Positions 12,001-63,535 of a stretch of 64,000 nucleotides of DNA are shown in pieces (position 1 is the first letter of the stretch; each line of letters begins with the position of its first letter). The DNA is taken from contig QPMI01000494.1 of the NCBI GenBank assembly GCA_004431415.1, forward strand, positions 248,001-312,000, read 5' to 3'. A program made the position numbers and the translations under genes. This DNA comes from Cyanophora paradoxa CCMP329. Taxonomy: Eukaryota; Plantae; Glaucophyta. The notes beneath the pieces are model-generated. The model saw only the letters and a program-made list of their open reading frames with translations, searched no databases and was not told the DNA's origin.

Positions 12001-15000
12001 CAGGTCCTCATGAACGGCGCCTCGGTCGGCACCGTCTCGGGCGGTAAGACCTCGATGAGCGTCTCGGACCTGCCGCGCGGCGGCGTCGCGAACCTGAGCG
12101 TCGTGCCCATCGGCGCCGGCGGCGTGCGCGGCGCGGCGTCGGCCCCGCTGTACGCCGGCATCCCGTCGGACCCCGGCTCGGGCATCGTGCTGACGTCGGC
12201 GGCGGCCGGCGCCTCGAGCGCCCGCCTCGCGTGGACCCGCCCCCGCGGCGCCGCCTCCGGCTCTGTCTTCCAGTGCGCGAAACCGTTTTCGCGGGCCCGC
12301 CTGCCCGCGCCACGCCGGGGCTGACGCATCTGCTGCTTTGCGCGCGTGCAGGTACCGCGTGCTCCGCAACGGGCAGCAGATCGCCACGGTGCCGGCGTCG
12401 GGCGCCGAGACCACCGTGTTCACGGCGAACGGCGTCCAGCCCGGCTCCGCCTTCTCGATCGTGCCCCTCTCGGCGACCGGCAACCCGAGCGGCCCCGGCA
12501 GCGTCGCTGTTCCTGTACATGTGGCTATGGTCGCAGCCGGCGCCGCCGCGGGTGCAGCGGCTGGCTATGGCGCTGGCAACGGAACACGCAGCATCGCCGC
12601 CCCTGGCGCGCCCTCGAACCTGCAGCTGACGGGCATCTCGGCGGGCCTCATGGGCGGCGCCTCGGGCACCCTCTCGTGGAGCCGCCCGGCCTCGGGCGCC
12701 CCCGAGAGCTACCAGGTCCTCATGAACGGCGCCCCCGCCGGCTCCGTCTCGGGCGGCAAGACCTCGGTCACCGTGTCCGACCTGCTGGTCGGCGGCATCA
12801 CGACCCTCAGCGTCGTCCCCGTCGGCCCGGGCGGCGTGCGCGGCGCGGAATCGGCTCCGCTCGTCGCCGGCATCCCGTCGGACGCGGGCTCGGGCATCGT
12901 GCTGACGACGGCGGTGGCCGGCGCCTCGAGCGCCCGCCTCGCGTGGACCCGGCCGCGCGGCGGCGCCTACGGCCCGATTTCGCAGTGCGTGCAAATCCCA
13001 TTTGCGGCCGCGAAACGCGCTGCCCGCGACGTGCCCCTCGCTGACCTCCATTTCCGCAGGTATGCGGTCCTCAGCAACGGCCAGCAGATCGCGACCGTCC
13101 CATCGTCGAGCTCCGCCCTCGCCACTTTCACGGCGAACAACGTGCAGCCCGGCGCCGTCTTCTCGGTCGTGCCCCTCTCGGCGACCGGCAACCCGAGCGG
13201 CCCCGGCAGCCTCGACGTCCCGCTCTCGGGCTCCGGCGGCGCGGGCTTCGGCGCCCCGTCGGCCCCCTCGAACCTGCAGCTGACGGGCGTCGACTCGGGC
13301 CTCATGGGCGGCACCTCGGGCACCCTCTCGTGGAGCCACCCGGCCTCGGGCGCCCCCGAGAGCTACCAGGTCCTCATGAACGGCGCCCCCGCCGGCTCCG
13401 TCTCGGGCGGCAAGACCTCGATGAGCGTCTCGGACCTGCCGCGCGACGGCGTCGCGAACCTGAGCGTCGTGCCCATCGGCGCCGGCGGCGTGCGCGGCAC
13501 GGCGTCGGCCCCGCTGTACGCAGGCATCCCGTCGGACCCCGGCTCGGGCATCGTGCTGACGACGGCGGCGGCCGGCGCCTCGAGCGCCCGCCTCGCGTGG
13601 ACCCGCCCCCGCGGCGCCGCCTCCGGCTCTGTCTTCCAGTGCGCGAAACCAAACCGTTTTCACGGGCCCGCGCCACGCCGGGGCTGACGCATCTGCTGCT
13701 TTGCGCGCGTGCAGGTACGGCGTGCTCCGCAACGGGCAGCAGATCGCCACGGTACCGGTGCCAGCGTCGGGCGCCGAGACCACCGTGTTCACGGCGAACT
13801 GCGTGCAGCCCGGCTCCGCCTTCTCGATCGCGCCCCTCTCGGCGACCGGCAACCCGAGCGGCCCCAGCAGCGTCGCTGTTCCTGTGGCTATGGTCGCAGC
13901 CGGCGCCGCCGCGGGTGCAGCGGCTGGCTATGGCGCTGGCAACGGAACACGCAGCTTCGCCGCCCCTGGCGCGCCCTCGAACCTGCAGCTGACGGGCATC
14001 TCGGCGGGCCTCATGGGCGGCGCCTCGGGCACCCTCTCGTGGAGCCGCCCGGCCTCGGGCGCCCCGAGAGCTACCAGGTCCTCATGAACGGCGCCCCGCC
14101 GGCTCCGTCTCGGGCGGCAAGACCTCGGTCACCGTGTCCGACCTCCTGGTCGGCGGCATCACGACCCTCAGCGTCGTCCCCGTCGGCCCGGGCGGCGTGC
14201 GCGGCGCGGAATCGGCTCCGCTCGTCGCCGGCATCCCGTCGGACGCGGGCTCGAGCTCGGGCATCGCACTGACGGCGGCGGTGGCCGGCGCCTCGAGCGC
14301 CCGCCTCGCGTGGACTCGGCCGCGCGGCGGCGCCTACGGCCCGATTTCGCAGTGCGCGCAAATCCCATTCGCGGCCGCGAAACGCGCTGCCCGCGACGCG
14401 CCCCTCGCTGACCTCCATTTCCGCAGGTATGCGGTCCTCAGCAACGGCCAGCAGATCGCGACCGTCCCGTACGCGTCGTCGAGCTCCGCCCTCGCCACTT
14501 TCACGGCGAACAACGTGCAGCCCGGCGCCGTCTTCTCGGTCGTGCCCCTCTCGGCAGCGGGCGAGGCGAGCGGCCCCGGCAGCCTCGACGTCCCGCTCTC
14601 GGGCTCCGGCGGCGCGGGCTTCGGCGCCCCGTCGGCCCCCTCGAACCTGCAGCTGACGGGCGTCGACTCGGGCCTCATGGGCGGCACCTCGGGCACCCTC
14701 TCGTGGAGCCACCCGGCCTCGGGCGCCCCCGAGAGCTACCAGGTCCTCATGAACGGCGCCCCCGCCGGCTCCGTCTCGGGCGGCAAGACCTCGATGAGCG
14801 TCTCGGACCTGCCGCGCGACGGCGTCGCGAACCTGAGCGTCGTGCCCATCGGCGCCGGCGGCGTGCGCGGCACGGCGTCGGCCCCGCTGTACGCAGGCAT
14901 CCCGTCGGACCCCGGCTCGGGCATCGTGCTGACGACGGCGGCGGCCGGCGCCTCGAGCGCCCGCCTCGCGTGGACCCGCCCCCGCGGCGCCGCCTCCGGC

Positions 15001-18000
15001 TCTGTCTTCCAGTGCGCGAAACCAAACCGTTTTCACGGGCCCGCGCCACGCCGGGGCTGACGCATCTGCTGCTTTGCGCGCGTGCAGGTACGGCGTGCTC
15101 CGCAACGGGCAGCAGATCGCCACGGTACCGGTGCCAGCGTCGGGCGCCGAGACCACCGTGTTCACGGCGAACTGCGTGCAGCCCGGCTCCGCCTTCTCGA
15201 TCGTGCCCCTCTCGGCGACCGGCAACCCGAGCGGCCCCAGCAGCGTCGCTGTTCCTGTGGCTATGGTCGCAGCCGGCGCCGCCGCGGGTGCAGCGGCTGG
15301 CTATGGCGCTGGCAACGGAACACGCAGCTTCGCCGCCCCTGGCGCGCCCTCGAACCTGCAGCTGACGGGCATCTCGGCGGGCCTCATGGGCGGCGCCTCG
15401 GGCACCCTCTCGTGGAGCCGCCCGGCCTCGGGCGCCCCCGAGAGCTACCAGGTCCTCATGAACGGCGCCCCCGCCGGCTCCGTCTCGGGCGGCAAGACCT
15501 CGGTCACCGTGTCCGACCTCCTGGTCGGCGGCATCACGACCCTCAGCGTCGTCCCCGTCGGCCCGGGCGGCGTGCGCGGCGCGGAATCGGCTCCGCTCGT
15601 CGCCGGCATCCCGTCGGACGCGGGCTCGAGCTCGGGCATCGCACTGACGGCGGCGGTGGCCGGCGCCTCGAGCGCCCGCCTCGCGTGGACTCGGCCGCGC
15701 GGCGGCGCCTACGGCCCGATTTCGCAGTGCGCGCGAATCCCATTCGCGGCCGCGAAACGCGCTGCCCGCGACGCGCCCCTCGCTGACCTCCATTTCCGCA
15801 GGTATGCGGTCCTCAGCAACGGCCAGCAGATCGCGACCGTCCCGTACGCGTCGTCGAGCTCCGCCCTCGCCACTTTCACGGCGAACAACGTGCAGCCCGG
15901 CGCCGTCTTCTCGGTCGTGCCCCTCTCGGCAGCCGGCAACCCGAGCGGCCCCGGCAGCCTCGACGTCCCGCTCTCGGGCTCCGGCGGCGCGGGCTTCGGC
16001 GCCCCGTCGGCCCCCTCGAACCTGCAGCTGACGGGCGTCGACTCGGGCCTCATGGGCGGCACCTCGGGCACCCTCTCGTGGAGCCACCCGGCCTTGGGCG
16101 CCCCCGAGAGCTACCAGGTCCTCATGAACGGCGCCCCCGCCGGCTCCGTCTCGGGCGGCAAGACCTCGATGAGCGTCTCGGACCTGCCGCGCGGCGGCGT
16201 CGCGAACCTGAGCGTCGTGCCCATCGGCGCCGGCGGCGTGCGCGGCGCGGCGTCGGCCCCGCTGTACGCAGGCATCCCGTCGGACCCCGGCTCGGGCATC
16301 GTGCTGACGACGGCGGCGGCCGGCGCCTCGAGCGCCCGCCTTGCGTGGACCCACCCCCGCGGCGCCGCCTCCGGCTCTGTCTTCCAGTGCGCGAAACCGT
16401 TTTCGCGGGCCCGCGCCACGCCGGGGCTGACGCATCTGCTGCTTTGCGCGCGTGCAGGTACCGCGTGCTCCGCAACGGGCAGCAGATCGCCACGGTGCCG
16501 GCGTCGGGCGCCGAGACCACCGTGTTCACGGCGAACGGCGTGCAGCCCGGCTCCGCCTTCTCGATCGTGCCCCTCTCGGCGACCGGCAACCCGAGCGGCC
16601 CCGGCAGCGTCGCTGTTCCTGTGGCTATGGTTGCAGCCGGCGCCGCCGCGGGTGCAGCGGCTGGCTATGGCGCTGGCAACGGAACACGCAGCTTCGCCGC
16701 CCCTGGCGCGCCCTCGAACCTGCAGCTGACGGGCATCTCGGCGGGCCTCATGGGCGGCGCCTCGGGCACCCTCTCGTGGAGCCGCCCGGCCTCGGGCGCC
16801 CCCGAGAGCTACCAGGTCCTCATGAACGGCGCCCCCGCCGGCTCCGTCTCGGGCGGCAAGACCTCGGTCGCCGTGTCCGACCTCCTGGTCGGCGGCATCA
16901 CGACCCTCAGCGTCGTCCCCGTCGGCCCGGGCGGCGTGCGCGGCGCGGAATCGGCTCCGCTCGTCGCCGGCATCCCGTCGGACGCGGGCTCGGGCATCGC
17001 ACTGACGGCGGCGGTGGCCGGCGCCTCGAGCGCCCGCCTCGCGTGGACTCGGCCGCGCGGCGGCGCCTACGGCCCGATTTCGCAGTGCGCGCGAATCCCA
17101 TTCGCGGCCGCGAAACGCGCTGCCCGCGACGCGCCCCTCGCTGACCTCCATTTCCGCAGGTATGCGGTCCTCAGCAACGGCCAGCAGATCGCGACCGTCC
17201 CGTCGTCGAGCTCCGCCCTCGCCACTTTCACGGCGAACAACGTGCAGCCCGGCGCCGTCTTCTCGGTCGTGCCCCTCTCGGCGGCCGGCGAGGCGAGCGG
17301 CCCCGGCAGCCTCGACGTCCCGCTCTCGGGCTCCGGCGGCGCGGGCTTCGGCGCCCCGTCGGCCCCCTCGAACCTGCAGCTGACGGGCGTCGACTCGGGC
17401 CTCATGGGCGGCACCTCGGGCACCCTCTCGTGGAGCCACCCGGCCTCGGGCGCCCCCGAGAGCTACCAGGTCCTCATGAACGGCGCCCCCGCCGGCACCG
17501 TCTCGGGCGGTAAGACCTCGATGAGCGTCTCGGACCTGCCGCGCGGCGGCGTCGCGAACCTGAGCGTCGTGCCCATCGGCGCCGGCGGCGTGCGCGGCAC
17601 GGCGTCGGCCCCGCTGTACGCCGGCATCCCGTCGGACCCCGGCTCGGGCATCGTGCTGACGACGGCGGCGGCCGGCGCCTCGAGCGCCCGCCTCGCGTGG
17701 ACCCGCCCCCGCGGCGCCGCCTCCGGCTCTGTCTTCCAGTGCGCGAAAGCAAACCGTTTTCACGGGCCCGTGCCACGCCGGGGCTGACGCATCTGCTGCT
17801 TTGCGCGCGTGCAGGTACGGCGTGCTCCGCAACGGGCAGCAGATCGCCACGGTGCCGGCGTCGGGCGCCGAGACCAACCTGTACACGGCGAACGGCGTGC
17901 AGCCCGGCTCCGCTTTCGCGATCGTGCCCGTCTCGGCGACCGGCAACCCGAGCGGCCCCGGCAGCGTTGAGGTGCCTCTTTCGACGACTGGTGACGGTCG

Positions 18001-18037
18001 GCATACGCAGACGTACACATCTGGGTCCTTCTACTAG
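39..18037 (+). CDS. Giant multi-exon single-pass receptor (5' end outside window): unknown N-terminal region, FN3, Pro/Thr linker, PKD/REJ-like module, GPS autoproteolysis motif, TM, about 26 FN3-like repeats
   Basis: Spliced exons give REJ-like motifs (VLTAVIAGGDRSVGRDASFVVDG..SYNP..YEYQW at 4733-4920; PPKPGQCSVTP..VTAEGWT..LPLSYT at 5920-6120), GPS ..LFWN..WEPC..RCTHLTTF (8797-8817), TM LPFILPIAFGIGGVALLLAGFAVA (8998-9069) followed by KAK, then FN3-like repeats in frame through GT/GC-AG introns to stop 18035-18037. Linking exons 39-4350 to the same gene is inferred. Confidence 0.75.
11245..17975 (+). repeat. Five near-identical ~1365-bp tandem units (each 4 FN3-like domains and 2 introns)
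   Basis: Units start at about 11245, 12611, 13974, 15347 and 16711 (CCCTCGAACCTGCAGCTGACGGGCATC). Each has two related halves, and the introns are repeated along with the exons. Confidence 0.97.
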
Positions 18038-18534
18038 ATAAACTGCTTCTCGCGATCGGTATAGATCGCTTACGCTACTAGGGTAATGATATGTTGCAAA
18101 TTGGCGTACATACTGTTCCGCTGTCGGACGTGCATTAAATGATTATCGCTGTCGGACCTTGCACATGCCGCAGTGCAATCGCAATCATTGAACGCCCTGC
18201 AATTATGCACTTTCGACACTTTCAAAAACGAGACGCCACGTGCACGTGCACGGCCTGTATACGTACATGTCAAGCATCGTTCCTTTCCTTTTATAACGGA
18301 AGCTATAGAGGGCATTGCGGCTTAAGCTTCTTCGAAAGGGCTTTTCTTTCGAATTTGAAGCTAACTATAGAGGCGCACGGTAATTAATATAATCTCGGAA
18401 TCCGCGGCGTCATTTTTAAATTAGCGAATTGGCATTAAATATTGCCGTCGGCACTTGCTACCGTAGTACGTATATACGGCCTACAGTACAGTCCGCTACA
18501 CAAACGTTAACGTTACCACTACCATTACTAGTAC

Positions 18535-19720
18535 TTAGGCATCCGCTGCGTCATTTGCATATTCGGCCTCGACATCCAGCATCTGACGCGCGAGCCCGAT
18601 CTTAGGCGAAACTTGACACGGATCAATTCGAAATCAAGATTGAAGGGACGCACGGTGATCTCGGAGTCGGCCTCGGCGAGGTCGAGGTCGAATTCGAGCT
18701 CCATGGCCACCTGCTGAGCCTCCTCGTCCAGCTGAGTCACCTGCGCCGGATTGGATTCAGTGTTTCTTAAGCTTTAAATTTAATTTGGCCCAGAGCGGAT
18801 TGCAGCGCGGCAAAAATACGAACTGCGTTGCAAACGGTGTCGTACTGTGCGCGGTAAGACTTGCCGCCCGCGTCCTTGCAACTGCGGCGGGCGGAAGATG
18901 GCATCGATATCGATACCGCGGCCGGCAGCACGCACGCGCATATGCATCTTCAGCAAATCATTGAATCTAGACACGCCGAACTATGCCTGCAATCGCAGAT
19001 GTGGTATGGAGGATGAACTCACGAGGAGGTGGACTCGTGGCCCTTCCCAAGGGCTGAGCCAGAGCAATCCGAGCTTGTGAAGCAGAAGCCATTCCACTGG
19101 TCCTCACCTAGTCTCGTTTAAGACAGAGCAAAAGGATAATTATATATATAAGAAGAATAGAATGGTTTGCAGACAGTAAGGGTTTGAGTTTGATGTAGGA
19201 GGATGCTGAACCCCGAATCCAACGGCGGTTACTGGTTAGATTTTTGCATGCATGCGCATGGCTTGGGCGATCGCGAGCGCGGTCAGAACTTCGGAACATT
19301 AAAAGAGGTGACGCACAAAAACACTCCAACCCTTGTAGGTGTCCGAGAAACAACTGCGAAATGGAGTATCAGCGGTGCGCGTGCGCTCACGGCGGCGCGA
19401 ATCTAATTGTAAAGCAGCATGCGCAAGTCGGCCGCACTCGGCCTTGGTGTTGATCTGATTGCCATTGGAGTAAGTGATCCTCGTCCCAGCGCAGCCCTTC
19501 GACTGTTACAGTGCTCCGACCGGTCAGTGTTTCGTTGAGCTCGAGAGATGCGCATGCATATGCATGCGCAGCTGGGATCATAGATCATATAGACACGCAC
19601 CGCAAAGCACGGCATGTTTACGCAGTGATTTTGATGAAGATTCCGAAGTTCTGGTCACTGGCCGCGGGTGGATGCTGCAGTGGAGTGAGAGGCACTGGCA
19701 CTATGTGACTGCAGACTCAG
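18535..19720 (-). CDS. Possible small multi-exon gene or relic of unknown function
   Basis: Minus-strand exons with AG/GT boundaries read CKDAGGKSYRAQYDTVCNA|VTQLDEEAQQVAMELEFDLDLAEADSEIT|MLDVEAEYANDAADA*. Upstream exons are uncertain. Confidence 0.35.
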
Positions 19721-20055
19721 TGCAGAGTTGTGCAGACCTACTAGCTATAGCCTAGAAGGAGCCTAGTCTCAGCCTACTACTAGCACTGGGAGGCACTGGT
19801 ATTGTGGCAGGCCTAGGCGCCGGCTGGAAGCCTGCTGCCGGGCCCGGGGCCCGGGCTAGCGCTAGCGCTGGACTCCGGGATCCGGATAGCGATCGCCGAT
19901 CGTTATCGGTCGTTCAGAGTCACTGCAAGACCTACAAGCCTAGAAGGAGCTGCAATTTGTCGAAAAAAAGATGCCAAGTACAGAAGAGCTATCTAGATCT
20001 CCGAAGAGTCTAAGAAAAAGAGGTTGCGACTTGAGTCGCGAGCCTCGGCGGAATT

Positions 20056-20258
20056 TCAAATTAATGCGTTTTTCGCTGGCAAAACGCATTAATTTGGGAC
20101 CGCATTAATATCGAAACGCTAAGAAACTGCTGTATAGTATGTACCCCCCTACTGCAGCCAAAAAGCTTCAAAACGCATTAATTCGGCGCCGCATTATTAT
20201 CAATACATGCAAGGGGTCCTATAAACCGCATTAATTTCTGGCGCATTAATTAAGTGCT
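20056..20258. mobile_element. MITE-like hairpin repeat family A (GCATTAAT-rich), copy 1
   Basis: Clear homology to 34070-34302 and, inverted, to 27410-27570. Internal hairpin CAAATTAATGCGTTTT..AAAACGCATTAATTTG. Confidence 0.7.
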
Positions 20259-20274
20259 ACACCCGCCTATTATA

Positions 20275-20522
20275 TAATTACCCGGCCCGAGGATCGAATG
20301 TTTTTCGAAGGGCCAAAATACCGCGGTACGTATACCAAATTACCGCGTTTTACAAAATTTGAGGCTTGAATTAAGTTGTATGGGGCGGTAATTGTGGGGG
20401 GTACTATATGGAGCAACTTGGCTGCAGCATATTACCGCGCCCGGTACCAAATTACCGCGTTTTAACAAATTCTCGGCGCAGTAATTTGGTACCGCGGTAA
20501 TTCAGTGGGCGCGGTATTATAG
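20275..20522. repeat. MITE-like repeat built from ATTACCGCG / CGCGGTAAT motifs
   Basis: Direct repeat GGTACCAAATTACCGCGTTTTA at about 20325 and 20443, plus inverted copies near 20483-20520. Confidence 0.5.
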
Positions 20523-27409: not shown

Positions 27410-27570
27410 TATTGATGCGTTTTTTAACGCTTTCTCGTCTGCATGAAGACCTGGAGGGTACTGACTCCATGCGGTTTCTTAGCGTTCTCTTATTAATTTA
27501 TAATGCGCCAGCGGAAAACGCATTAATTGGGGGGGCGCATCAGTTAAGTGCGCGCATTACTTGAAAGTGC
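27410..27570. mobile_element. Family A repeat, inverted partial copy
   Basis: GCCAGCGGAAAACGCATTAATT..GTGCGCGCATTACTT matches the reverse complement of about 34070-34125. Confidence 0.6.
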
Positions 27571-27689: not shown

Positions 27690-28625
27690 AATTTAATTGC
27701 CGAATTTGACCAATTAAAACCGGACCGGAAGATATTGCCGTGCACGTGGCAATATTAAGAAATTGCCCGGCGCCGGCCGAAACTCTAGATCTGGATTTCT
27801 TCTATCATACTAATATGATAATAGCCCAACCCCCTGACTCAGTGAGAAATTGCCGGGACATGCCGTGGCTTAACTTAGTCACTTAGTAACTAAGCCTACT
27901 AAGCCTAGTAGTTAAGTTCATATTGCCGACTCGGCGACTCGGCGAGTTCGGCCTCTGGGGCCTCGGCCCTCGGGCCAGTGATGGGATTACAGATTAGGCC
28001 AAAATCCGCTCTTTTATTATAATATTACACTAACGTTATATAATATTATAATAACGATTAGAGTATTATAAATAACGCCCCATAGAAGAAGGCAGAGAAG
28101 GGCACCCCTGCACCTCACAGAACAGTTCTAAACGTTAGATCTAGAAAGAAGGATAAGAACATCGCCTAAGCTATTATACTGTCGATTTCAGAATGCAGAC
28201 TCTGAGACATCTAAATTCCCGTGGTTTCACCAGAGGGAGGCTCGGGCCCTCGGCAATATACGGCCGCGCCGCGGGGCGGCGCGGGCAGCCGCCGCCGGCG
28301 CGGCGGCGCCGGGCTCCACTGACTCGGACGCCGGCGCCGCGGACTCCGCGTCCGACTCGTACTACTAGACTGTAGGGATGAGTAAATTGCCTCGTAGTTA
28401 AAATTGCCGAATTCGACCAGAACCGGAATTGCCGTGGCGATAAATTGCCGAAATTCTGGATTTCTTCTATGGCGCCAATGCCGCGCGCGCCATACCGTAG
28501 ACTGGTCCGTAGTACAGAAGCGGCCGTTTAGCCCTACCCCCTGAGAATTGCCGTAACTCTAAACTGCCGAATTTGGCCTCTCGGGAGTCGGGCCTCGGCA
28601 ATAAACGGCAATTTAAAACATCGGC
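27690..28625. repeat. Two diverged copies of an AATTGCCG-rich MITE-like element (27690-28260 interrupted; 28385-28625)
   Basis: Shared ordered blocks AATTGCCGAATT-GACCA, CTGGATTTCTTCTAT, CCCCTGA..GAATTGCCG and GGCCTC..CCTCGGCAATA. Confidence 0.7.
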
Positions 28626-29226
28626 TAAAAAAGCAATCCTACAGTAGTACCGTAGACTCCGTAGTACGTACAGCGAGTCCCTGCGGAGCAGGAGTGGCCT
28701 TAAGCTTGGGGTTGAGGGGCGTCAAGCCTAAAAAACGGTCAAGGCGTGAAGGCGGCCGCTCTTTTTTTACCAGGGGCACGCAACCGCGCGCGGTTATGCA
28801 GGGGAGGGGGAAGCTTAAGAGAAATAGGGGGGCCACTCGGCAAGGGTAGACGCTCAATTGAGAGGGTACGGATTTGTGCCGCAAGGGTACATGATGCGGG
28901 CGGCCAGTAATAAGGCTCTGTTTAAATTGTTAACTAGGGGCCCGGCCGCGATTCTCGCGCCGGGGGTGCAAGGGGGGAATCGGGATCTAAAACATGCACG
29001 GGGCAGATCTAGATCGACCCCGGCGCAGTGCGCGGGGCAGGTTGAAGTGTAAAGATAAACAAGCAGATAAAAATAGGAAAGGCCCGATAAGCAGACGCTG
29101 CGATCAAACCGAATGTTCTGGAGCGGAAAAACGCTGCGCGATCAAACCGAATAAAGAAAAGCCTCAATGAAAGGCCAGATTCATCAACTGTGTTCGTACG
29201 GCCTACCGCTAACCCTGAACAGCTGG

Positions 29227-30367: not shown

Positions 30368-30532
30368 CGCACTGCAGCTGCGAGGAAGCGGAAATCTAGA
30401 GGAGACAGCTAGAGAGAAGTGGTTCCATGCAGAACCGCGCAACGAAGAGCAAGGCGTACGCGACGCACTGCGAGGAAGCCGAAATCTAGAGGAGACAGCT
30501 CAGGAGAACTGGTTCCATGCAGAACCGCGCAA
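30368..30532. repeat. ~90-bp direct duplication inside the Helentron-like element
   Basis: CGAGGAAGC.GAAATCTAGAGGAGACAGCT..TGGTTCCATGCAGAACCGCGCAA occurs twice. Confidence 0.85.
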
Positions 30533-31196: not shown

Positions 31197-32185
31197 TAGG
31201 GCTGTCGTCAGTCACTGACAGTCACAGTCAGAGGGTCTGACTGACCTCACTGGGTCAGCTTTTGGCTGACTGACGTTTTCTCAGTCCCATACAACACCCT
31301 GCTGGGAGCGTGCCCCCCTGTGGCCCAGTGGGCTTTTTCCATCTAGAGCTGACGTGGGTCGACCAAAAAATAATCTTCTGTCGTTGAAATCTTCAAGAAA
31401 CCGCCCATGTGCATGGTAAGAGGCTAATGCATATGGAGTCTGACGTGCGCCTGGCTAGGGCCCCGGGCCGAATCTCCTTTTCTCGTGCCTGGCCTTGGCC
31501 TGATGCTTGGCAACTCAGAATGAAGTAGATAGATCGCGCTTGGGTGAATTCCTCCCAATTTCCTGGTCATTTTTCACGGCTTTTGCACGGTAGCCTGACT
31601 GAACCTCGGGTTGACTGATTCAGTCACAGTCAGGGGGGCTGACGGACTGGGTCAGCCGGGGGACTGACTGACGACTAGGGCTGTCGTCAGTCACTGACAG
31701 TCACAGTCAGAGGGTCTGACTGACCTCACTGGGTCAGCTTTTGGCTGACTGACGTTTTCTCAGTCCCATACAACACCCTGCTGGGAGCGTGCCCCCCTGC
31801 GGGCTTTTTCCATCTAAAGCTGACGTGGGTCGACCAAAAAATGATCTTCTGTCGTCGAAATCTTCAAGAAACCGCCCATGTGCATGGTAAGAGGCTAATG
31901 GAGTCTGACGTGCGCCTGGCGGGGGCCGAATCTCCTTTTCTCGTCCTCTCTGCTCGCATAACGTGCCTGGCGGCCCTGGCCTGACTCAGTGATGCTTAGC
32001 AACTTGAATGAAGTAGATAGATCGCGCTTGGGTCAATTCCTGCCAATTTCCTGGTCATTTTTTCCGGCTTTTGCACGGTAGCCTGACTGAACCTCGGGTT
32101 GACTGATTCAGTCACAGTCAGGGGGGCTGACGGACTGGGTCAGCCGGGGGACTGACTGACGACATCACTACTGACGACAGCACTA
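31197..32185. mobile_element. hAT-type MITE, outer copy, 8-bp TSD GTACGTAT
   Basis: TIRs TAGGGCTGTCGTCAG / CTGACGACAGCACTA. GTACGTAT at 31189-31196 and 32186-32193. Confidence 0.92.
31676..32170. mobile_element. Second copy of the same hAT MITE nested in the right TIR of the first, TSD CTGACGAC
   Basis: Near-identical to 31197-31675. CTGACGAC at 31668-31675 and 32171-32178. Confidence 0.9.
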
Positions 32186-32277
32186 GTACGTATACTCCGT
32201 CCGAGTCCGGGAATGTCCGACGGTCCGCGGCGACGGACTCGGGTCCCGGAATGGCCGCGGCCTTGCTCGGCCATCAC

Positions 32278-32750
32278 TAGGGCACTGGCCAGCGGCCCGG
32301 CCGAACAGCTGGCTGGCTGGTTTCGGACTTTTACTTCAGGCTGGCCCAGCCGCCCGATTTGTTGACCAGCCGGGCCAGACTTTTTCGGCTTTATCGGGCG
32401 GCCAGCCGGTCGGCGACACTGGCTGGGGGGTCGGCTCCAGGCTAGGAGTGGGGCTTGAGGGGGTGGCTTGATTAGATCAACTGCTCATTCTCTTACTGTG
32501 CACAATAAAACAGTTATAAAATCGTTTCTAAGACACCAAGTTCATTTAACAACGGGGGCTCTGCGGCTGGTCGGCTGGCCAGCTGACCTAGCCGAGTCTT
32601 TGGCTCGTAGCTGGAGGCTGGTTGCCAGCTGGCCGGCCAAGTTTTGGCTGCCAGGCTGGAAGCTGGCGGCCAGCCCCGGGCCGCTGGCAAGGCTTCGTCG
32701 GCTTGGGCTGGCCCGCTGGCCAAAGGGAGACCTGGCTGGCCAGTGCCCTA
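32278..32750. mobile_element. hAT-type MITE, different family, 16-bp perfect TIRs, TSD GCCATCAC
   Basis: TAGGGCACTGGCCAGC ... GCTGGCCAGTGCCCTA, with GCCATCAC at 32270-32277 and 32751-32758 and GGCTGGCC subterminal repeats. Confidence 0.93.
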
Positions 32751-32789
32751 GCCATCACTCAAGTTTTAGCATCGATATCAATTTTGTTG

Positions 32790-33215
32790 AGAAGCGGACT
32801 CCGGGAGCGTTTGTCGGGCGGCTCGGGACTCGAGTCGGGAGTCGGGACCCGGGGACCGGGGGCCCGGGACTCGCCATCCGACTCGTGATCCGAGGCATCG
32901 CGATCGGGATTCGGGAGTCCGACGGTCGGGAGTCTCGGGACCGGAGTCGGGAGCCGGAGTCGGGAGTCGGGTCACACGTATACGTAGAAGGACCTTTTTT
33001 TCACAAGAAGCGGACCCTTTTTTTCACAAGAAGCGGACCCTTTTTTTCACAAGAAGCGGAGCCTTTTTTATCAGAAGCGGATCGAATCCGATCGATTTGT
33101 TTTTTAAGAAGCGGTCCAAAGAATTCGAAGCGGTCCAAGCGGACTTCAAGTCTTCATTGACTCTTCAAGGCTTTTTGTAAATAATTTCAAAGAAGCGGAC
33201 CTTTTTTTCGGGGGT
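32790..33215. repeat. GGGAGTC/GACTC and AGAAGCGGA motif arrays (probable MITE subterminal repeats)
   Basis: TTTTTTCACAAGAAGCGGA occurs three times, with further AAGCGG motifs. Confidence 0.6.
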
Positions 33216-53072: not shown

Positions 53073-56000
53073 ATGAGCGGCAAGCCTCGCGTGGTCATCA
53101 TTGGTGCGCGCCGTTGGTTAGGCCCCGCGCCGCGCGGCACGCGAAGCGGCTCCGAGCCGCTCTCCCCGGGCGCGCCGGGCCTCCTCCCGCCGCTTCCGGG
53201 TCCCTCGCATGTAGTTATCCGCGGCTAGCGTGCAACCTCCTGTCCTCCCGCGGGCCGGCCGGACTGCGCGTGCCGGGCCGCCGAGCAGCGGCACGCGCAT
53301 CGGCTCCTAGCCGCGCCGCACCCCTCCGCACATTCCGCCAGCTCAGGCACCCTCCATAGCTAACAACAACACAGCCGAGCTTGCCCGGTCGCTCATCGTG
53401 CGCTCCCTCCTTTCGCAGGCGGCGGCTTCGCGGGCGCGAAGCTCGCGCGGATCCTCGAGAAGGTCGCACATGTGACGCTCATCGAGGCGAAGACGTACTT
53501 CGAGCACAACCTGGCGATCCCGCGGGCCCTCGTCAACGAGAACTACGTCCCGCACATTCTGGTAGACCACCGCGAGTACCTGGGGTGAGGGCGACCGAGC
53601 CGCGCGTGCTTGCCTGGGCATGCGGCGGTGTCGCTCAAAGTTCTCATTTCCGTTCCTCCTCCTGCTCCGCCGCCGCCGCCGCAGCTCGACCTACATTATC
53701 GTCGGCCGCGGTCCGCCGGCTCTCTTTCCTTCCACCCTCCGTTCCTCCAACTTCCCGTCTGAGATTCGCTTTCCTTCGCTTTCCTCGCCGCAGTCGAGGA
53801 GGTCCGGCCGGAGGGCGTGCGCGTCCAGAACCGGGTGCGCGCCATCCGTCTACATTTGAATCTCGAATTTGATCTCGGATTCGATCCGAATTTGATCTCC
53901 TCCTTTCTGCACGTCAGGCCGACCCGGTGCCCTACGACTTCCTGGTGGTCGCCACGGGCCTCTCGTACGGGCCCTGGAAGGCACTAGAGTCCACACGGGA
54001 GGAGCGCGTCCAGACCCTCCAGAGCTTCCGCGACCAGGTGCGGGGGGAAGAAGGAAGGGGTGGCGCGCCGCTCTGGGCGCTTGGGTCTGGAGCTAGCAAG
54101 CTCGCTTGCTACCTGGCAGGGCGGGTGGGTCCCTGGGCCGAGGGGGCTCCGCCTGCGCTGCCGGCGGCCCGGCATCCAGCGGAACTAGCTGGATGCCTAG
54201 CTAGCCAGCCATCCGGGCTCGCTCGCTCGCTTCTTCTCGAGCTTGCGGCTCACGCTCGCTGTCCGACAGCTGCGGAACGCAAGCGAACTATCTAGGATCC
54301 TCCCGACTAGCCCCTTTTTAAGGTCCTTTAAAGGCTAAAGTTCGTGATGCTCTAAGGTCCTTAAAGAGGTCGCTACAGATCTGATTCGCCGTTCGGACAG
54401 CTGCGTAACGCGGGGCGGGTGCTGGTGGTGGGCGGGCGCTCGACGGGCGTCGAGATCGCCGGCGAGCTCCTCGCCGCCGACCCCCGCAAGCAGGTCAGAT
54501 CGGATCAAGTTAACCCCTTTAACGACCTTAGAGCCTTAAGAACTTGAGCTTCTAAAGGACCTTAAAAACGGGCCTTACAAGGGCCCTCCCCGCGAGGCTC
54601 CTCCTGCCGCCCTCGCGCTACCCTTTTCCTTTCTTCCTTCTGCCTCCGCTGCCGCCGCTGCCGACTCCGCCTTGGCACCCGTGGGTCTAGACCCAGACGC
54701 CCCCGCCGCCTCCAGCCCGGCCCAAGGCCCTCCCGCTTCCTGGCTGGCTAGCTAGCTAGCGCCTGGCGCCTCCTAGGAGGCACCAGGGACTATCGGGGTG
54801 ATCCTGGCTAGCTAGCTAGCGCCTGGCGGCCCCCTTGCTAGTTTCCCACAGCCCCCGCCTAGGGATCCTACACCGGCCGAAGCCGGGGGCGGCCCGCCTT
54901 GCTAGCTCCCCTGCCTAGCCTAGGGACCCAGGATCGACCCGCCGCCGCATCCCCGCCGCTGATCGATCGCGCGCCCGCCCTCCCGCCCGTCTGCCCGCAG
55001 GTCACCATCGTCCACTCCGGGCCCAGGCTGCTGGCGAGCTTTCTCCCCCCCCCTCCCTCCCCCCCGCCCTGACCCCTCTACCCCCCCTTCCCTCCCCTCA
55101 GGACGACATGGCGTCGGAGAAGGCGCAGGCGCACGCCGAGAAGTTCTTCGCCTCCCGCAACGCCAAGGTCCGTTGAACCTTAGGATCTAATCTAAGTCTA
55201 AGATCTTAAATCCCCGGCCTAGGACCTTAAGAAGATATAGGACCTTAGAATCGTGCCAACGCCAAGGTCCGTTTAACCCTCCCTGGGACCTTGCCATAGG
55301 ATGCGCCTTAGGGACCTTGGCCCCCCCGCCTCCTTTCTCCCTCCTTCCCCTCCAGAGCTTCTTCTTTCTAGGTGTATCCTAGCTAGCTAGCTAGCTAACG
55401 CTATCTTGCTAGTCTCCTCCGTCCGTCGCTCCTCACAATTGGGACCTCCTTATAGTAGATGGGGCCTTCGGACCTTCCCGGCCACCCCGGCCTATATATA
55501 GCTAGCATCCTAAGATCTTTCTCTTTGGAATTTCCTTGAGCTTTCCGGGCCTTCTGCCCTGACGAGCCGGCCGCTCCCGGGCCCGGCCCACTCGAGCTCC
55601 CCCCATTCTTCCCCCGCCTGACTGGGGCCGCGCTCAGGTGATCTGCAACGACCGGATCGAGGGCCTCAAGCCCGGCATCGTCGGCGGCACCCGCAACTAC
55701 AGGACCAAGTGCGCGGCTAGGCCAGGCTAGGCTAGGCTGGGCTCGGAGGAGAGAAGCTTGGCGGCTTAGCTTTAACCGGGGACAAGGGCCTTAGCTTAGG
55801 TCAAGCTTTCTCCTTGGGACGTTAGCTCCTCCTTGGGAAGAAGAAGCTTATAATTAGGGCCCTTAATTAAGGAAGTCAATTTTGTAGTTTCCTTGGGACG
55901 TTAGCTCCTTCCAGGATCTTCTTCTTTAGGACGCTAAGCTTCTTCCTCCTCTTCGCAGCGCGGGGGTAGACGTCGCCGCGGACGTCACCGTCGTCGCCAT

Positions 56001-56893
56001 CGGGGGGGGGACGCCCAACTCGGGCTTCATGCGCGCCGCGTTCCCCCAGACGCTGGTACCCCCCCCCCCCGACCAGTCCCCCCCCCCTTCCCTGTCTTTT
56101 CTAATCGCCTTTCTAATAACAGGACGCGACCGGCCGCATCCGCGTCGAGAAGACCCTCCAGGTCCGCGGATGCGTACCCCCCTGAACTCCCCCCTCTGAT
56201 TCTGTACCCCCCAGGTCGTGGGCCAGCCGAACATCTTCTGCATCGGCGACGTGAGCGATTTCCCCGACGGGCGGAAGGTACCCCTACCCTTCCACCCCCC
56301 CCCCCCCCCCCCCCCCCGCCAGAGCTTTGGAGCCTCAAGCCCAGCCCAGCCTAGCCTAGCCTCTAGCCTCTAGCCTCTAGCATATAGCTACGATTTCCCC
56401 GGCGCTCACTCACCGGCCGGGCGGGCTGCAGGGCGCGTACGCGGCGCAGCTGCACGCGGACGTTTGCGGCAAGAACATCGAGCGTCTGATTAAGAAGGGT
56501 AAATTTGATTCGGATTCGATCTCGTATCATATCACTGATGAACTTGTTTGTCGCGCGCGAAGGCGCCGGCGCGAAGCTGAGGGAGCACAAGCCGGCGCCG
56601 GCCGGGGGACTGGTCACCCTCGGCCCGGGCGACGGCATCCTTTCCTTCCCGAAGTGAGCGTTCCCCTCCCCTACAAGGGCGTTCGCCTGAACGTTCCTCC
56701 GAAGGTTTACGGCGACGGGCTGGCTCCCCCGCGCCATCAAATCGAAGGACATGTTCGTCAAGTCGATGGTACCCCCCTTCACCTTCTTCCCCCTCCCTTC
56801 CCACCTTCCTCCTGTGTTCTGAGCTTCCGTTTGGCCTCTCGTCCGCAGCGGAAGGGCGTGCTTGGGCTCAAGACCCCCAAGATCGAGCAGTAG
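53073..56893 (+). CDS. AIFM2/FSP1(AMID)-like FAD-dependent pyridine nucleotide oxidoreductase
   Basis: RVVIIGGGFAG, YDFLVVATG, VLVVGGRSTGVEIAGEL, VTIVHSGPRLL, PNIFCIGD, LVTLGPGDG and IKSKDMFV. Confidence 0.9.
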
Positions 56894-57980
56894 GGCGCGC
56901 GCGGCCGGGCCGCGGCGCCGGCCGCGCGGCCGCGGGCAGGGCAGGCGCCGCCGCCAGCGGCCGCCGGCCGCCCAGCCTCTCTCTTCTACTTGCGGGCCGG
57001 TCCAGTCGAGTAGACGAGAGATCAATTCCCAGTCGTCGCTCCTTCGTCGGTTACTTTGTTAGCCCTCAGGGCTTCACGATCAGGCCAGCGCCCCGAGTTC
57101 TATTGATTTATCGTACTAAATTTAATAGCGCTCTTAAGGCTTTATTTCAAGGTGTAGATGTAGCTAGATCCCCCTCCAGTGCATGATACTTCTCCCTGCA
57201 ACAGTGTAATACGTTAACTTTATTGACGTGTCCGACGGTATTATTAATACAATTGCAATCGCAAAGTACCAAAACGTGCCGCTTAAGCTCGATCGCCGGG
57301 CCCGGGCGCTAGGCCATGCGCCATGCAGCTGCAGAATGATGCAGGCCCTTCAAAAAATTTGGCGCCGCGGCGCGACCTGAGCCCTCGAGATCGCTGTCAG
57401 TGTGAGCTAAAAAGTACTCGGCTCGATCGCCAGCTCGAGTAAGTGATCGACATTTCGCACGCCGGGCGCCGGCGCCAGCGGCCGCGCAGGCGCCCGGCGC
57501 TGCGGTCGCGGTACCGGTACGTATACGTATATACGTATACGCCGCGCCGTGACGCGCGGGCCCGGCCGCGGCCCGGCAGGCCGGCGCCGCGGCGCGGGGA
57601 TCCGGGAGCTTGGAGCGGGGACCGGCCCGGCGGCCGCGGGCGTGCGCCGCGCCGGGGCCCGCCAGGCTGGGACCGGACCTGCGATCGGTCCGAAGCGCTA
57701 GCGCGCGCGCGCCAGCTGCAGGCCTAGGGCCATAGCCTAGTAGCGCGCGCCATGCATGCGCATCTGCCGGCGCCGGCGGCGCTACGACCTAAATCTACAT
57801 CGCCGAGTCGGCGGGACATATATACGGAGCGGCGGCGGCGCCGGCGCCGCGCGGCGCTCCGTCGTCGCAGCGCTGAGATCGAGGCCTAGGGCCGGGTTCC
57901 GGGCGGGACCGGGCCGGGCCGGGGGGTACCGTTTCAGGGGTCCGACCACCTGATTATGATCGACGCCACCTGATAGCGGG

Positions 57981-60900
57981 ATGTTCGACTCTTTCAGCCT
58001 GAAGGCCCTGCACTTGAAGGACCTGGCCACCGGGCTCTCCGCCGCCTGCGTCGCGCTCTCGCCGGTCCGAACTTTCCGCGAAGTTCTAGATCTAGCGTCC
58101 ATGAAGGGGTTCGATGCCGTGCGATTGGCGCGTAGGCTCACTTCGAATCCGGATCGCGCAGGATGGGTCCGTCGTCGCGACGAGCAAGGGCGGCGGCTGC
58201 AGCGTACGTGTGTTCAAGACAGAGACCGGCGAGCTCCTGCAGGTCTTGAAGCACCACAAGCGTTTCGTCACGGCTCTCGCTATCACGCAGGTGCCGCACC
58301 CGCCCGCCCGCGCCCGCGCCCGGCCCGCAGGCCTTAGTTCTAGATCTGATCATATGCATGACCTGGCCCGCGCCGGCCCGGCCCGGCCCGACTGCGTGCA
58401 GGATGGCAAGACGCTTGTTTCTGCCTCTCTGGACGCAGACAGCGCCGCGTGCGCCTGGTCGCTGGCCGCCGCTCCGGGCGAGCAGCCGTCGACCGGGCCA
58501 ACGAAAGTCTTCGCGGACAAGAAGGCCCACACGGACGGCGTGCTTGCGCTCGCGGTCTCGGCCGACGGCCGGCTGCTCGCCACGGGCGGGCGCGACAGGC
58601 TCGTCTGCGTCTGGCGCCTCGACGAGGGCCGCTTCGTCCAGCCGCTCGCCGCCCACTCGGGGGCCGTCCGCTGCCTCGCGTTCTCCGCCGTGCGCACGCG
58701 CTTCCCGCCTCCTCCGAGGCTCCTCGAATCCCTCTTAAGCTTAGGGGTACAGGACGGGAAGGCGCTCGTGTCGGGCGGGGACGACGGCGCGCTCGTCGTC
58801 TGGCGCCAGAACAGCGGCGGCGGGTGGACGCAGGAGAAGCACATCGCGGCGCACGCAGGAGCCGCCTTCTCCGTCGCTGTCAGCCAAGTGCGCGTCCGCC
58901 ATCGACGACGTCGCCTACCGAGCCTAAGCTAGCCTAACTAAGCGCGCAGGACGGGAAGTTCGCATTCTCCGCGGGCGCGGACAAGGCGGTGCGGAAGTGG
59001 GGACTGTCGGGGGCCGCGGTCGCGAAGGCCGAGGGCCACACGGACGCCGTCCTCAGCATCGCCGTATCCCGGGTGCGGCTTCGCCCCACCCCCCCCCCCC
59101 GCCCTCCATCCCCAGCGCCTTCCCCCCCCTCCCCCCCCAACAACAACGCTTGGACTCTACCACTCCCCGACGCTCCCCCTCCTCCTCCCCTTTCCCCCTC
59201 CGGCCCTCCCCCCCTCCCCCCTCCTTCCCACCGCCTCCCCATCGCCTCCCTCCCCTTCCACCCCCCCTCCTCCGCTTCTTTAACCCTCATCCCTCATCGC
59301 TTCGAATTCCCGCGCCCGGCCTCCGCGCCTCCGCCGCCCGACCCCACCCCCCCCCCCCCCCCACCCACCCACCCTCCACCCGCCTTCCCCACGTTGCCCC
59401 CTCCCCTCCTCCGCTTCGATCGTCCGCTTTGAATTCCCTTCCTTATCCCGCCCCTGCCCACCGCCCTCCATACCCCCCTCGCCTCCCCCCCTCGCCTCCA
59501 CCCCCCCACCCACCACCGACCCTCCACCCCAGCCACCCACTCCGCCCTCTCCCCTACCCCTCCCTCACCGTCCCAACCCCACACACCCCACGCCTCCACC
59601 CTCCCCCACCCCACCCCACCCCCTCCCTCCGCCCGCCATCCCCCTTTCCCTCCCCCGCCCTTCTCCTCGCCTGAACATCGCCATGCAGGACGGCTTGAAA
59701 CTGTTCTCCTCGTCGCGGGACAAGACCGTGAGGGAGTGGGAGATCCCGGAGGGTAGCCTTATCGGCCTGGACACGCTCAAGCGGGCCGTGAGCGGCGGCA
59801 TGGAGGAGTGGAAGCTCGTCAACACGCGGCTCAAGACCGATGCCGCCACCTCCCTGAGCCTTTCCAAGGTCCTTGCGGCGTACCCCCTCGAGCTGTATCG
59901 TACCCCCGATATTTTCTGAAGACCGGGTACAGAGCGGGGACCTGCTTGCCGAGGCGGAGGCCGGGGGCCAGGTGGTTCTGACGTGGCGCGCGGCGCGCAA
60001 CGGGGTCGCGCAGCGCGTTATCCCCGTCAGCAACGCGCAGGAAGTGCGTTGTGCCCCCGCTCCCTCCCCTTCCTCCCCTGCCCCCCTCCTCCCCCCCAAC
60101 CCCCCTTCTCCCCTTTTCCGGTCCCCCATCCCTTCCGCCTAGTGCCCTAGTGCGCTGTGCTAACAGTGTCCCAAGCCGCCCCGCCCTCCCTCCTCCCCTC
60201 CCTCCCCTCCCCCCCCCTGCACCCTACACCCTCTTCTCCCCTCCCCCCTTCCCGCCCCGACCCCCCATTCCTGCCCCCCTAATCGCATCAACGCCACCGC
60301 AGGCACCGGCAGCGGCCGCATCAACAGCACCTCCGCCGCAGCCAGCCCCCGCAGCTCCGGCCCCAGCCCCCCCAGCACCCGCATCCCCAGCCCCCTCGAC
60401 CCCTGTCGCCCCAGCTCCCGCCGTCGACGCCTCGCCGAAAGAGGGCCCAGCTGCAGCTGTATTGGCCCAGCCGGAGAGTCCGAGCGCGGCCGCGGGCGCT
60501 GCGGCCGCTGCGCTCGGCGCCGCGAAGCAGCTGATGGATTCGGGCAGCGCGAAGCTGATGGCTGTGAAGGACGACGTCTTCGGGCTTGGCGCCAAGTTCA
60601 AAGGCATGCTGAGGCGCGACAGCGCGCCGGACAAGGCGGCGGAGCCGCAGCCGCAGCCGCAGCTCCAGCCTGAAGCAGGAGACAAGAAGGCGGCGGCGGA
60701 GGTGGAGGCGAAAGCGTCAGAGACGGCGAAAGAGCAGCCGGAGGCAGAGGCTAAGCCTGCGGCGGCAGAGGCTAAGCCTGCGGCGGCAGAGGCTAAGCCA
60801 GCGGCAGCGGAGGCTATGCCAGCGGCGGCGGAGGCTATGCCAGCGGCAGCGGAGGCTAAGCCAGCGGCGGCAGAGGCTAAGCCTGCGGCGGCAGAGGCTA

Positions 60901-61964
60901 AGCCAGCGGCAGCGGAGGCTAATCCGGCGACGGCGGAGGCGGCTCTAGTGCCCACTCACGGCCTTCCTGCTGCCGCGGCAGCAGCGAAGTCGAACGGCGT
61001 CGGCGCTCCGCCCCTGGCCGTCGCCTCCGACGGCAAGCGTTGGGACGTTTTTGTGAGGCGCGTTCTTATGCTTCATTCGGCCCTCCCCTTTTTCATGCTT
61101 TCAATGCGCGCAGCTACGCGCACGTGGACGCTGCGATTGTTTTCCAGTACGCGAAAGCCCTCGAGGCGGCAGGCTTTTCGGTCTGGCGCGCCCTTCGGCC
61201 CCGCCCCGCCCCGCCCCGCCCCTCCCCGCCCCGCCCCGCCCCTCCCCGCCCCGCCCCGCCGTCCTCGCGCCGCTGAGCGTCCGCTCTCCGCAGGATCGAC
61301 CGCGAGCTGAAGACTGGCCAGCGCTGGATGGCCAAGATCGGCGTGCGCCATGACCCCCCTCCCCCCCGCAACTGTTTCGCCTTCCATCGGTAATCATATG
61401 AGGGCTTCCGCAGGATGCGATGGGCATCTGCCGTGCCTTTCTTTTATTCCTCTCCCCCGCCTACGTCGCCTCCAAGAACTGTCCGTACCCCCCTCGCCTC
61501 TTCCCCCCCCAGATTTGATCGCGCGGCAGGCGACGACGAGCTGCAGTACGCGCACCACCAGCTGCGCCTCCCCAAGTTCCCCGTCTGGATCGCCGACCCC
61601 AAGACCGTCGTCCTCCCCACCGACTACCGCATGGCGAGTTTGGCTCAGTTTTAGCCCAAGCACTAGTACTTGTTAATTAGACAAGCACTAGACAAGCCGA
61701 AGCACTAGTGCATGGCAAGCTTAGGCCCCATCTGAGCGTGACTCTACGTTGATTAGAGCCTTCTGAATCGATATCCCCATCCGAGCCTTGACTAGGCAAG
61801 CACTTCAGCGGCTGACGTCGCCGCAGATGATGGCCTCGGTGAACTGGCTCCAGCAGCAGGACGGGGAGATCGCCGCCGCCGTCGACGCAGCCTGCGCGAA
61901 GCTCATCGACGGCCTCCGGGACGCCGGCCTCCCGGGGCCCGCCTGCGGCCCCGCCGGGCCCTAG
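57981..61964 (+). CDS. WD40-repeat + Ala/Pro/Glu linker + C-terminal TIR (TIR_2-like) domain protein
   Basis: Six WD40 repeats (e.g. AHTDGVLALAVSADGRLLATGGRDRLVCVW). Spliced TIR reads WDVFVSYAHVD..LEAAGFSVWIDRELKTGQRWMAKIGDAMGICRAFLLFLSPAYVASKNCDDELQYA..KFPVWI. Confidence 0.88.
60744..60932 (+). repeat. 21-bp coding minisatellite, 9 x AEA(K/M/N)PAA
   Basis: GCAGAGGCTAAGCCTGCGGCG units read directly. Confidence 0.95.
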
Positions 61965-62736: not shown

Positions 62737-63535
62737 TCGGCCTTGGGGAAAGGAGAGGCCCTTAGGTCTGTTGGTCACTTGTCACAAAATTTTAGAAAGC
62801 GAAATTCGTATATCTGAAGACACCTACTACCCCATTTTAGACTCTGGGGAGCACGATGGTCCGGCCCGTTTTCCTATGAGAGGCCTCTAATGGGCAGTAA
62901 CAGCACGTCGAAAAGCACAGAAAAGCATTTTCCCGGAAAAAAATAGAAAGCGCAAATCACATTGGCCTTCCAAGTCGAAATTTGAAAATTATTAATTTGA
63001 AGAGACCGCACCCCATTCGCTAGGAAATAGTTTCCAAATTAACGGAGAGCCACGTGGCCGGCCAGCAAATTTGTATGAGTCAGGGTCGTTGTCACAGTGT
63101 GTGCCACGAGGTGGGTTTTAAATATACTTGATGCGTTAGTTGAAAGATTATCAAAATAAACAATTTAAACAGAGCCTTATTACTACGAATTACATTCAAA
63201 TGATTCATAGATAATTATCAACCACCTCCAAAAAGCGCCGAAAGTCGTTTTCATTCAGCTGAGACGACCAATGGGCCCCTCGGGGCCTGTACTCGGTACA
63301 ACTGCGGCCGATTGGGCCCCGCATCGATATCGATATCTGTACCCTTGCGGCACAACTCTGTACCCTCTCACTTGAGTGTGTACCCTTGCCGAGTATACGT
63401 AGACCCCTCTGTTTCTCCTCCCCCCTCCCCCGTAACCGCGCGCGGTTGCGGGCCCCCGTTAAAAAACAAAGAGCTGCCACCCTCACGCCTTGAAGCCCCA
63501 AGACCCAAGGCCACTCCTGCTACGCAGGGACTCGC
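62737..63535 (+). repeat. Dispersed repeat B copy lacking the Helentron-like insertion
   Basis: Reverse-complement homology to 30762-31182 and 28670-28931. Confidence 0.85.

Follow-up and report, generated by a model that had tools for sequence, protein, structure and literature searches.

Flank hairpins, their opening by the host and the subsequent end joining have been established for the hAT, Transib and MULE transposons and for RAG (PMC5499845), and the joints formed in V(D)J recombination contain palindromic (P) nucleotides of 1-3 bp (PMC3528771). Elements that duplicate 3 bp of their target (target site duplication, TSD) provide TSD-derived microhomology, which is used in repair (PMC4561436), and the Tpn elements of the CACTA family combine a 3-bp TSD with short footprints (bioRxiv 10.64898/2026.08.24.746626). 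Here we describe, in 64,000 nucleotides of the glaucophyte Cyanophora paradoxa CCMP329 (contig QPMI01000494.1 of assembly GCA_004431415.1, positions 248,001 to 312,000 of the forward strand; hereafter the window), numerous small insertions in which a triplet is followed by its reverse complement (rc) and then by the same triplet again, i.e. XYZ-rc(XYZ)-XYZ, together with a second class in which a single C and a single G separate the three words, i.e. XYZ-C-rc(XYZ)-G-XYZ. These scars are probably the excision footprints of one or more families of cut-and-paste DNA transposons with a 3-bp TSD and 5'-C...G-3' ends.

An inverted triplication of fixed length

A preliminary description of this DNA had listed 15 9-mers of the first form, and all 15 were recovered at their coordinates with a perfect fit to XYZ-rc(XYZ)-XYZ; these sites are confirmed in the window sequence only, and the comparison with independent data given below covers positions 32170-38160, a region chosen to avoid a 488-bp tandem repeat. 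The window as a whole contains 349 such 9-mers, or 311 once dinucleotide runs are excluded. For the latter figure Markov simulations predict 28 +/- 5 (order 1), 41 (order 3) or 84 (order 5, a background which already includes palindromic hexamers), and 100 dinucleotide-preserving shuffles in 500-bp blocks gave 32.9 +/- 6.6, the highest being 52. The count remains at 279 after four of the five tandem FN3 units are taken out. A comparison with Markov or shuffled backgrounds had been proposed as a check on the preliminary description, and at the scale of the window it yields a strong excess of about 11-fold (311 against 33 +/- 7). In the 311 perfect cases, against 33 expected, the palindromic nucleotides match the inverse complement of the adjoining flank exactly, with no loop.

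Variation of the word length shows that the size of the scar is fixed at exactly three bases. Inverted triplications of two-base words number 386 against 228 expected, those of three-base words 311 against 29, and those of four-base words 22 against 2.9; the four-base cases are mostly GC-rich or self-palindromic tandems and were dropped as a scar class, and words of five and six bases yield practically none in the window. Thirty of the 32 triplet classes occur among the 9-mers, the remaining two being excluded by the dinucleotide-repeat filter, and no preference was found in the window for the bases flanking the 9-mers. The earlier observation is confirmed.

The direct-inverted-direct arrangement could in principle arise without any cut, if a nascent strand, during a replication template switch or in snap-back synthesis by an end-joining polymerase, copied three bases of the opposite strand and then returned, leaving a micro inverted triplication. 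Inverted triplications produced by template switching are known at larger scale (PMC13334657, PMC11293582), and Pol theta produces templated insertions by snap-back (PMC4912351). However, the inverted segment in the window shows no continuum of lengths around three, its arms lack a loop, and the C/G spacer of the second class, described below, is invariant and untemplated, whereas the small inverted triplications described so far average 148/160/148 bp with 30-bp spacers (PMC13334657). We accordingly regard an origin by template switching or snap-back as very improbable.

A more radical objection is that there was no insertion process at all, the signature being an artefact of assembly or sequencing, a product of selection for palindromic hexamers, or the residue left by deletion of pre-existing long alleles. 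Palindromic hexamers are indeed 1.5-fold enriched overall (2104 in the window against about 1380 expected), but 580 of the 2104 lie inside the 9-mers and account for most of this excess. Isolated palindromes are not specifically enriched in the window. If two ends were hairpinned independently and nothing were duplicated, unrelated palindromes lying side by side would be predicted. Pairs of independent palindromes that abut one another (offset 6) number 123 against 29 expected, which is the same three- to fourfold ratio as at other offsets and hence no specific enrichment, so that a TSD-like duplication of the triplet is required in addition to the palindrome. The two remaining forms of this objection, artefact and deletion, are addressed by independent sequence data and by the polarity of the insertions, respectively.

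Insertions between paralogues and the class with C and G spacers

Alignments of paralogous copies within the window show the target triplet on both sides of each scar and a single copy of it at the empty site. The array of five FN3 units carries four independent 6-bp insertions (Table 1). Their long alleles are confined either to a single copy or to the pair of copies that arose by the latest duplication, and the remaining units generally have a single triplet; by parsimony over the five-unit array the insertions, being confined to minority copies, are therefore derived. A deletion process would have to run against this polarity, as fewer copies have the long alleles than lack them and those that do are nested among recent duplicates, and it would also leave the origin of the excess unexplained. 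Elsewhere, repeat pairs differ by clean 6-bp gaps at 27740, 27784, 30372, 30534 and 31427, by clean 8-bp gaps at 31321, 31982 and 63090, and by a double event at 63323-63337, and at 32648 precisely the 8 nt of the scar are missing from a contig of sequencing runs X2 and X9. The view that paralogues differ by clean insertions thus holds for the FN3 units and for the previously noted sites at 27740, 27784, 30372, 31427, 31982, 28811 and 63393. It holds in part at two others: TAC-GTA-TAC at 20327 is missing from the copy at about 20443, but the comparison needs an additional 4-nt difference, and the 9-mer CTT-AAG-CTT at 28699 is present, but the copies have diverged there and the insertion is not cleanly resolved in the alignment. 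Scars make up roughly one third to one half of all indels in the paralogue alignments, so that their designation as a dominant mutational force appears reasonable for small insertions, as measured in this window.

Short tandem duplications between copies form a second, less frequent class of insertions, exemplified by AAACC (13646-13650), an 8-bp GC-rich segment (12307-12314) and a TGCA duplication at 38073 in the contig of runs X2 and X9. FN3 unit 3 also differs from the other four units by 1-bp deletions at 14062 and 14094, which lie 32 nt apart; the reading frame is shifted for a short distance and then restored.

Independently assembled contigs (rather than raw reads) of four runs were compared with the window over the region 32170-38160. 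Contigs of the 2012 and 2024 runs show no differences from it over 33031-34118, and two substitutions and four gap letters over 34272-38058, a stretch with dozens of scars. As contigs of four runs from two different years match scar-dense DNA nearly perfectly, this stretch of about 6 kb is not an assembly artefact. The reading without any insertion process, whether by artefact, selection or deletion, is thus largely refuted, and we give it next to no credence.

The 8-nt forms noted earlier at 27835 and 31982 proved to be real and to belong to a class of 55 members in the window with invariant spacers, C and then G. This number compares with 2.4-4.5 expected (the higher figure being 4.5 +/- 2.4), an excess of about 12-fold, and the triplets involved are diverse. 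Other centre bases are near background, with four cases for A, five for T and 18 for G, the last being due to coincidence in GC-rich sequence or to tandem C-forms read in a shifted phase, and for this reason not retained as a class; centres of two to four bases are not enriched in the window. The form is identical when read from either strand, each strand having a C after the first triplet. The spacer C and G are not present in the paralogous empty sites, which carry a single XYZ. As the triplet may be any one and the flanking bases are unbiased, the C cannot derive from the target; its absence from empty sites with unbiased flanks instead indicates that DNA starting with C on each strand lay between the two triplets. 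The invariant C...G therefore implies resident DNA with 5'-C...G-3' ends. Scars with the extra base on one side only number 24 and 21 against about 12 expected for each, i.e. they lie at background, in contrast to the strong enrichment of both pure classes. The two ends of one event thus behave alike, pointing either to two element families or to a concerted choice at both ends.

When the perfect scars were removed recursively, 339 scars comprising 2,136 nt, or 3.3% of the window, were deleted, and eight nested second-round scars came to light, against 0-1 in simulations. Forms with one mismatch exceed expectation by 724, a figure that depends on the background model. This excess and the nested scars suggest a long history with many decayed scars.

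Distribution of scars over the window

Perfect scars occur about once per 190 bp (about 5 per kb) on average, and cluster in intergenic hot zones at 18-20, 32-38, 56-58 and 62-64 kb, where as many as 20 fall within one kb; GC-rich gene bodies have few of them. The WD40-TIR gene at 57981-60139, whose exons are 100% identical to EukProt EP00741_Cyanophora_paradoxa_P015542 (tig00020902_g15003.t1) and which has WD40 repeats, carries all six of its scars in introns (p = 0.03), its very short introns of 63 nt and 111 nt having two scars each. The identity of the exons places the window in Cyanophora paradoxa; an exact look-up of the protein gave no further contig. The 8-nt class, which shifts the frame, is scarcer in GC-rich, coding-like DNA when set against the 6-nt class, which keeps it (p = 0.016). 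The hexamer arrays at 41925-41992 may have arisen by iterated scar events or by slippage, and would encode dipeptide repeats.

Table 1. Positions of scars, scar-rich zones and related arrays in the window
Feature	Position	Remarks
TGT-ACA-TGT, 6 bp	12514-12522	FN3 unit 2 only; single TGT in the other four units
GGT-ACC-GGT	13751-13759	Common to 15124-15132; units 3 and 4 only; 6 bp not in units 1, 2, 5
CTC-GAG-CTC	14250-14258	Common to 15625-15633; not in units 1, 2, 5
CGT-ACG-CGT	14468-14476	Common to 15843-15851; single CGT in unit 5, CAT in units 1 and 2
Hot zone	18000-20000	34 six-nt and 6 eight-nt scars in 2 kb
TAC-GTA-TAC	20327-20335	No counterpart in copy at about 20443; extra 4-nt difference
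GTG-CAC-GTG	27740-27748	6-bp gap in 28430 copy
TCT-AGA-TCT	27784-27792	6 bp not in 28450 copy
TGA-C-TCA-G-TGA, 8-nt class	27835-27845	
CTT-AAG-CTT	28699-28707	Alignment diverged; insertion not cleanly resolved
AAG-CTT-AAG	28811-28819	Not in 633xx copy
CTG-CAG-CTG	30372-30380	Clean 6-bp gap in 30466 copy
GAA-TTC-GAA	30534-30542	Second copy of 90-bp tandem only
TGG-C-CCA-G-TGG, 8-nt class	31321-31331	Copy at 31800 has single CGG and is 8 nt shorter
ATG-CAT-ATG	31427-31435	Clean 6-bp gap in 31898 copy
TGA-C-TCA-G-TGA, 8-nt class	31982-31992	Clean 8-bp gap in first copy; empty site without C and G
Hot zone	32000-38000	65 six-nt and 22 eight-nt scars over 6 kb; independent runs agree
CTG-C-CAG-G-CTG, 8-nt class	32648-32658	8 nt missing in X2/X9 contig
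In-frame hexamer arrays (TCCGGA)n, (GTCGAC)n, (CTCGAG)n	41925-41992	Consecutive, in long open reading frame
Hot zone upstream of WD40-TIR gene	56000-58000	26 six-nt and 8 eight-nt scars
TCT-AGA-TCT and CAT-ATG-CAT	58339-58359	In 111-nt intron of WD40-TIR gene
CTC-C-GAG-G-CTC and CTT-AAG-CTT	58712-58742	In 63-nt intron of WD40-TIR gene
TGT-C-ACA-G-TGT, 8-nt class	63090-63100	Clean 8-bp gap in 30800 copy
ATC-GAT-ATC-GAT-ATC, two successive events	63323-63337	About 12 nt not in 288xx copy
GTA-TAC-GTA	63393-63401	Paralogue alignment

Several other repeats were observed in the same DNA. A 21-bp tandem repeat of 9.6 copies occupies 60739-60940 within the open reading frame (ORF) 60051-61310. The segment 33970-34370 is a high-copy repeat at about 100 times the single-copy contig depth, with further copies on the minus strand at 20057-20219 and 27507-27569; it contains an internal hairpin at about 34103-34146 with an 18-nt stem and an 8-nt loop, and a metagenome scan with a 23-nt word taken from it gave no matches. 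The segments 37770-37970 (about 45 times contig depth) and 32170-32770 (about 10 times) are likewise multi-copy, and the many contigs in which about 37874-37882 is connected to unrelated places suggest that a repeat ends or begins at this point.

Probable excision footprints and their closest relatives

The end products alone are observed, and the following steps are deduced from them. Insertion of an element would first duplicate the triplet XYZ. On excision each flank would be sealed as a hairpin by transesterification, the cut lying either flush with the TSD or one base into the element, in which case a C would be placed at the hairpin tip. A host nuclease would then open each hairpin at least 3 nt from its tip, to give a 3' overhang with rc(XYZ) at its end on the left flank and, on the opposite strand of the right flank, one with XYZ at its end. 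The two ends, being complementary over exactly the length of the TSD, could anneal, after which flap trimming, gap filling and ligation would complete the joint. Flush hairpins would thereby yield XYZ-rc(XYZ)-XYZ and C-tipped hairpins XYZ-C-rc(XYZ)-G-XYZ, and the scar would be stereotyped and of fixed length because a 3-bp TSD caps the usable microhomology. The model thus predicts both of the observed classes and no others. We take a loop-free palindrome adjoining its own template as the likely signature of a transesterification hairpin that was opened off-centre. Scars would accumulate where they are tolerated, namely in introns, in intergenic DNA and, for the in-frame 6-bp class, in coding repeats.

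Several observations weigh against the excision of transposons. No filled site was found in the window, i.e. no element lying between 3-bp direct repeats with C...G inverted termini. The search, carried out on both the raw and the scar-collapsed sequence, covered terminal inverted repeats that match exactly as 10-mers or 8-mers and have a 3-bp TSD, CACT/AGTG ends, and 10/12 matches starting with CAC, CAG, CTA or CCT. TSD-flanked inverted-repeat pairs show no excess in the window over a control with shifted TSDs (114 against 110 for pairs starting with C), and no element with CACT/AGTG ends is supported there. None of the 20 ORFs of the window that were scanned against Pfam contains a transposase domain, only FN3 and WD40 being found, so that the CACTA-type or other 3-bp-TSD transposase whose presence had been suggested as a test was not found among them. 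The hot zones show no enriched terminal motif beyond the C/G, the only motifs to emerge being the scar palindromes themselves. The density of scars demands very heavy and long-lasting traffic. About 240 one-sided scars would be expected if each end chose independently whether to retain its C, as against the background level observed. Finally, no scar polymorphism was seen among the four runs over 6 kb, which is silent on present activity as the runs appear to represent one strain.

Two segments were considered as elements with short terminal inverted repeats and rejected as weak and not significant alone. One, at 6807-8261, has the TSD ATT, 11 of 13 matching terminal bases and the start CACA, and the other, at 33593-33896, has the TSD TGC and termini starting with CACTGC.

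The lack of a donor element and of a transposase in the window would be expected if no transposon were involved and an endogenous or domesticated nuclease made breaks with a 3-nt stagger at arbitrary sites, the ends being sealed as hairpins and mended by host repair. Under such a scheme the extreme density and the clustering in hot zones could reflect accessible chromatin cut by the host enzyme, and the all-or-none behavior of the C/G class could reflect two modes of that enzyme. It would have to explain, on the other side, an invariant and untemplated C that is not present in the empty sites and whose target flanks show no C/G bias, and we know of no endogenous nuclease that combines a 3-nt stagger with hairpin sealing. 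We consider such transposon-free break and repair unlikely, while allowing it a better chance than template switching. The preliminary description had left the choice between traffic of a hairpin-forming 3-bp-TSD element and a break-repair or template-switch pathway undecided. The element is favored by the evidence, on account of the size fixed at three, the presence of the triplet in three copies and the invariant C...G missing from the empty sites; the donor itself and its transposase were not found in the window.

If the scars are excision footprints, the closest candidate superfamily for their source is CACTA (CMC), in which the TSD measures 3 bp or sometimes 2 bp, a placement that rests on the length of the TSD and one terminal base pair; of CACTA...TAGTG termini only the first and last base (C...G) of the putative element are recorded in the scars. 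A further reservation about this placement, and about the excision reading through it, is that hairpin chemistry in CACTA has to our knowledge been inferred from footprints only and not shown biochemically. The earlier grouping of hAT, CACTA and RAG as hairpin-forming systems is therefore sound for hAT and RAG (PMC5499845), and for CACTA would rest on footprints.

Full-text searches of a literature library found no description of this scar signature in Cyanophora or elsewhere, and the 2019 Cyanophora genome paper, which gives 29.4% repeats, does not mention it (PMC6704402). What would be new here is that footprints of the hairpin type are deterministic and at saturating density, for which we found no published description. 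A tentative generalization, which we offer with less confidence than the excision reading itself, is that one deterministic reaction, in which a 3-bp-TSD element leaves by way of hairpins and the ends are joined by microhomology limited to the TSD, could be the main source of small insertions in C. paradoxa. If so, this reaction wrote a considerable part of its introns and intergenic DNA (3.3% of the window as perfect scars, and possibly of the order of 10-20% with decayed ones), filled the genome with palindromes resembling restriction sites and added two-codon insertions to coding repeats. Alternatively, an element-free and new form of endogenous hairpin break repair could be at work. The scars would explain why short palindromes are so abundant in the introns and spacers of Cyanophora. 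Inverted repeats were reportedly noted in the introns of the Cyanophora actin gene in a 1997 study, and the scars would account for these as well. The footprints of transposons tend to be few, untidy and difficult to spot, and the past load of excisions is normally unreadable from sequence; a deterministic and countable scar would allow a census of past excisions, of their ages and of their regional preferences. It would also offer a natural system in which the opening of hairpins and joining by microhomology could be studied outside the V(D)J recombination of vertebrates, and a view of a mutational process by which repeat proteins gain two residues in frame. In practical terms, degraded genes and repeats of the C. 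paradoxa genome should be easier to align and to annotate once the scars have been removed recursively.

The scars resemble the footprints of hAT, Transib and MULE elements and the P nucleotides of V(D)J joints in containing the exact inverse complement of the adjoining flank (PMC5499845, PMC3528771), in keeping the target duplication and occasionally a terminal base of the element, and in implying host hairpin opening and end joining. They differ in that the known footprints vary in length and sequence, whereas those of C. paradoxa consist of one deterministic product or its C/G variant, with a P length equal to the TSD length and a density of about 5 per kb in non-coding DNA. With CACTA/En-Spm (CMC) elements such as Tpn1 of morning glory they share a 3-bp TSD (here deduced from the scars), the lack of strong target specificity, termini with C as their first and G as their last base, and short excision footprints (bioRxiv 10.64898/2026.08.24.746626); however, Tpn footprints are variable, at 3-5 bp, and neither a CACTA terminus past its first base nor subterminal repeats nor a transposase were seen in the window. 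In mPing, of the PIF/Harbinger superfamily, the 3-bp TSD likewise provides the microhomology that makes repair stereotyped (PMC4561436), but mPing restores its site precisely by means of staggered cuts, whereas the homology in the scars lies between the P nucleotides and the other copy of the TSD, so that 6 or 8 bp are added. The direct-inverted-direct structure is also that of small inverted triplications and template switches, yet those triplications are about 150 bp long, with spacers and with microhomology at their junctions (PMC13334657), have a link to replication and FEN1, and show neither a fixed length nor the invariant C/G that marks the scars of C. paradoxa.

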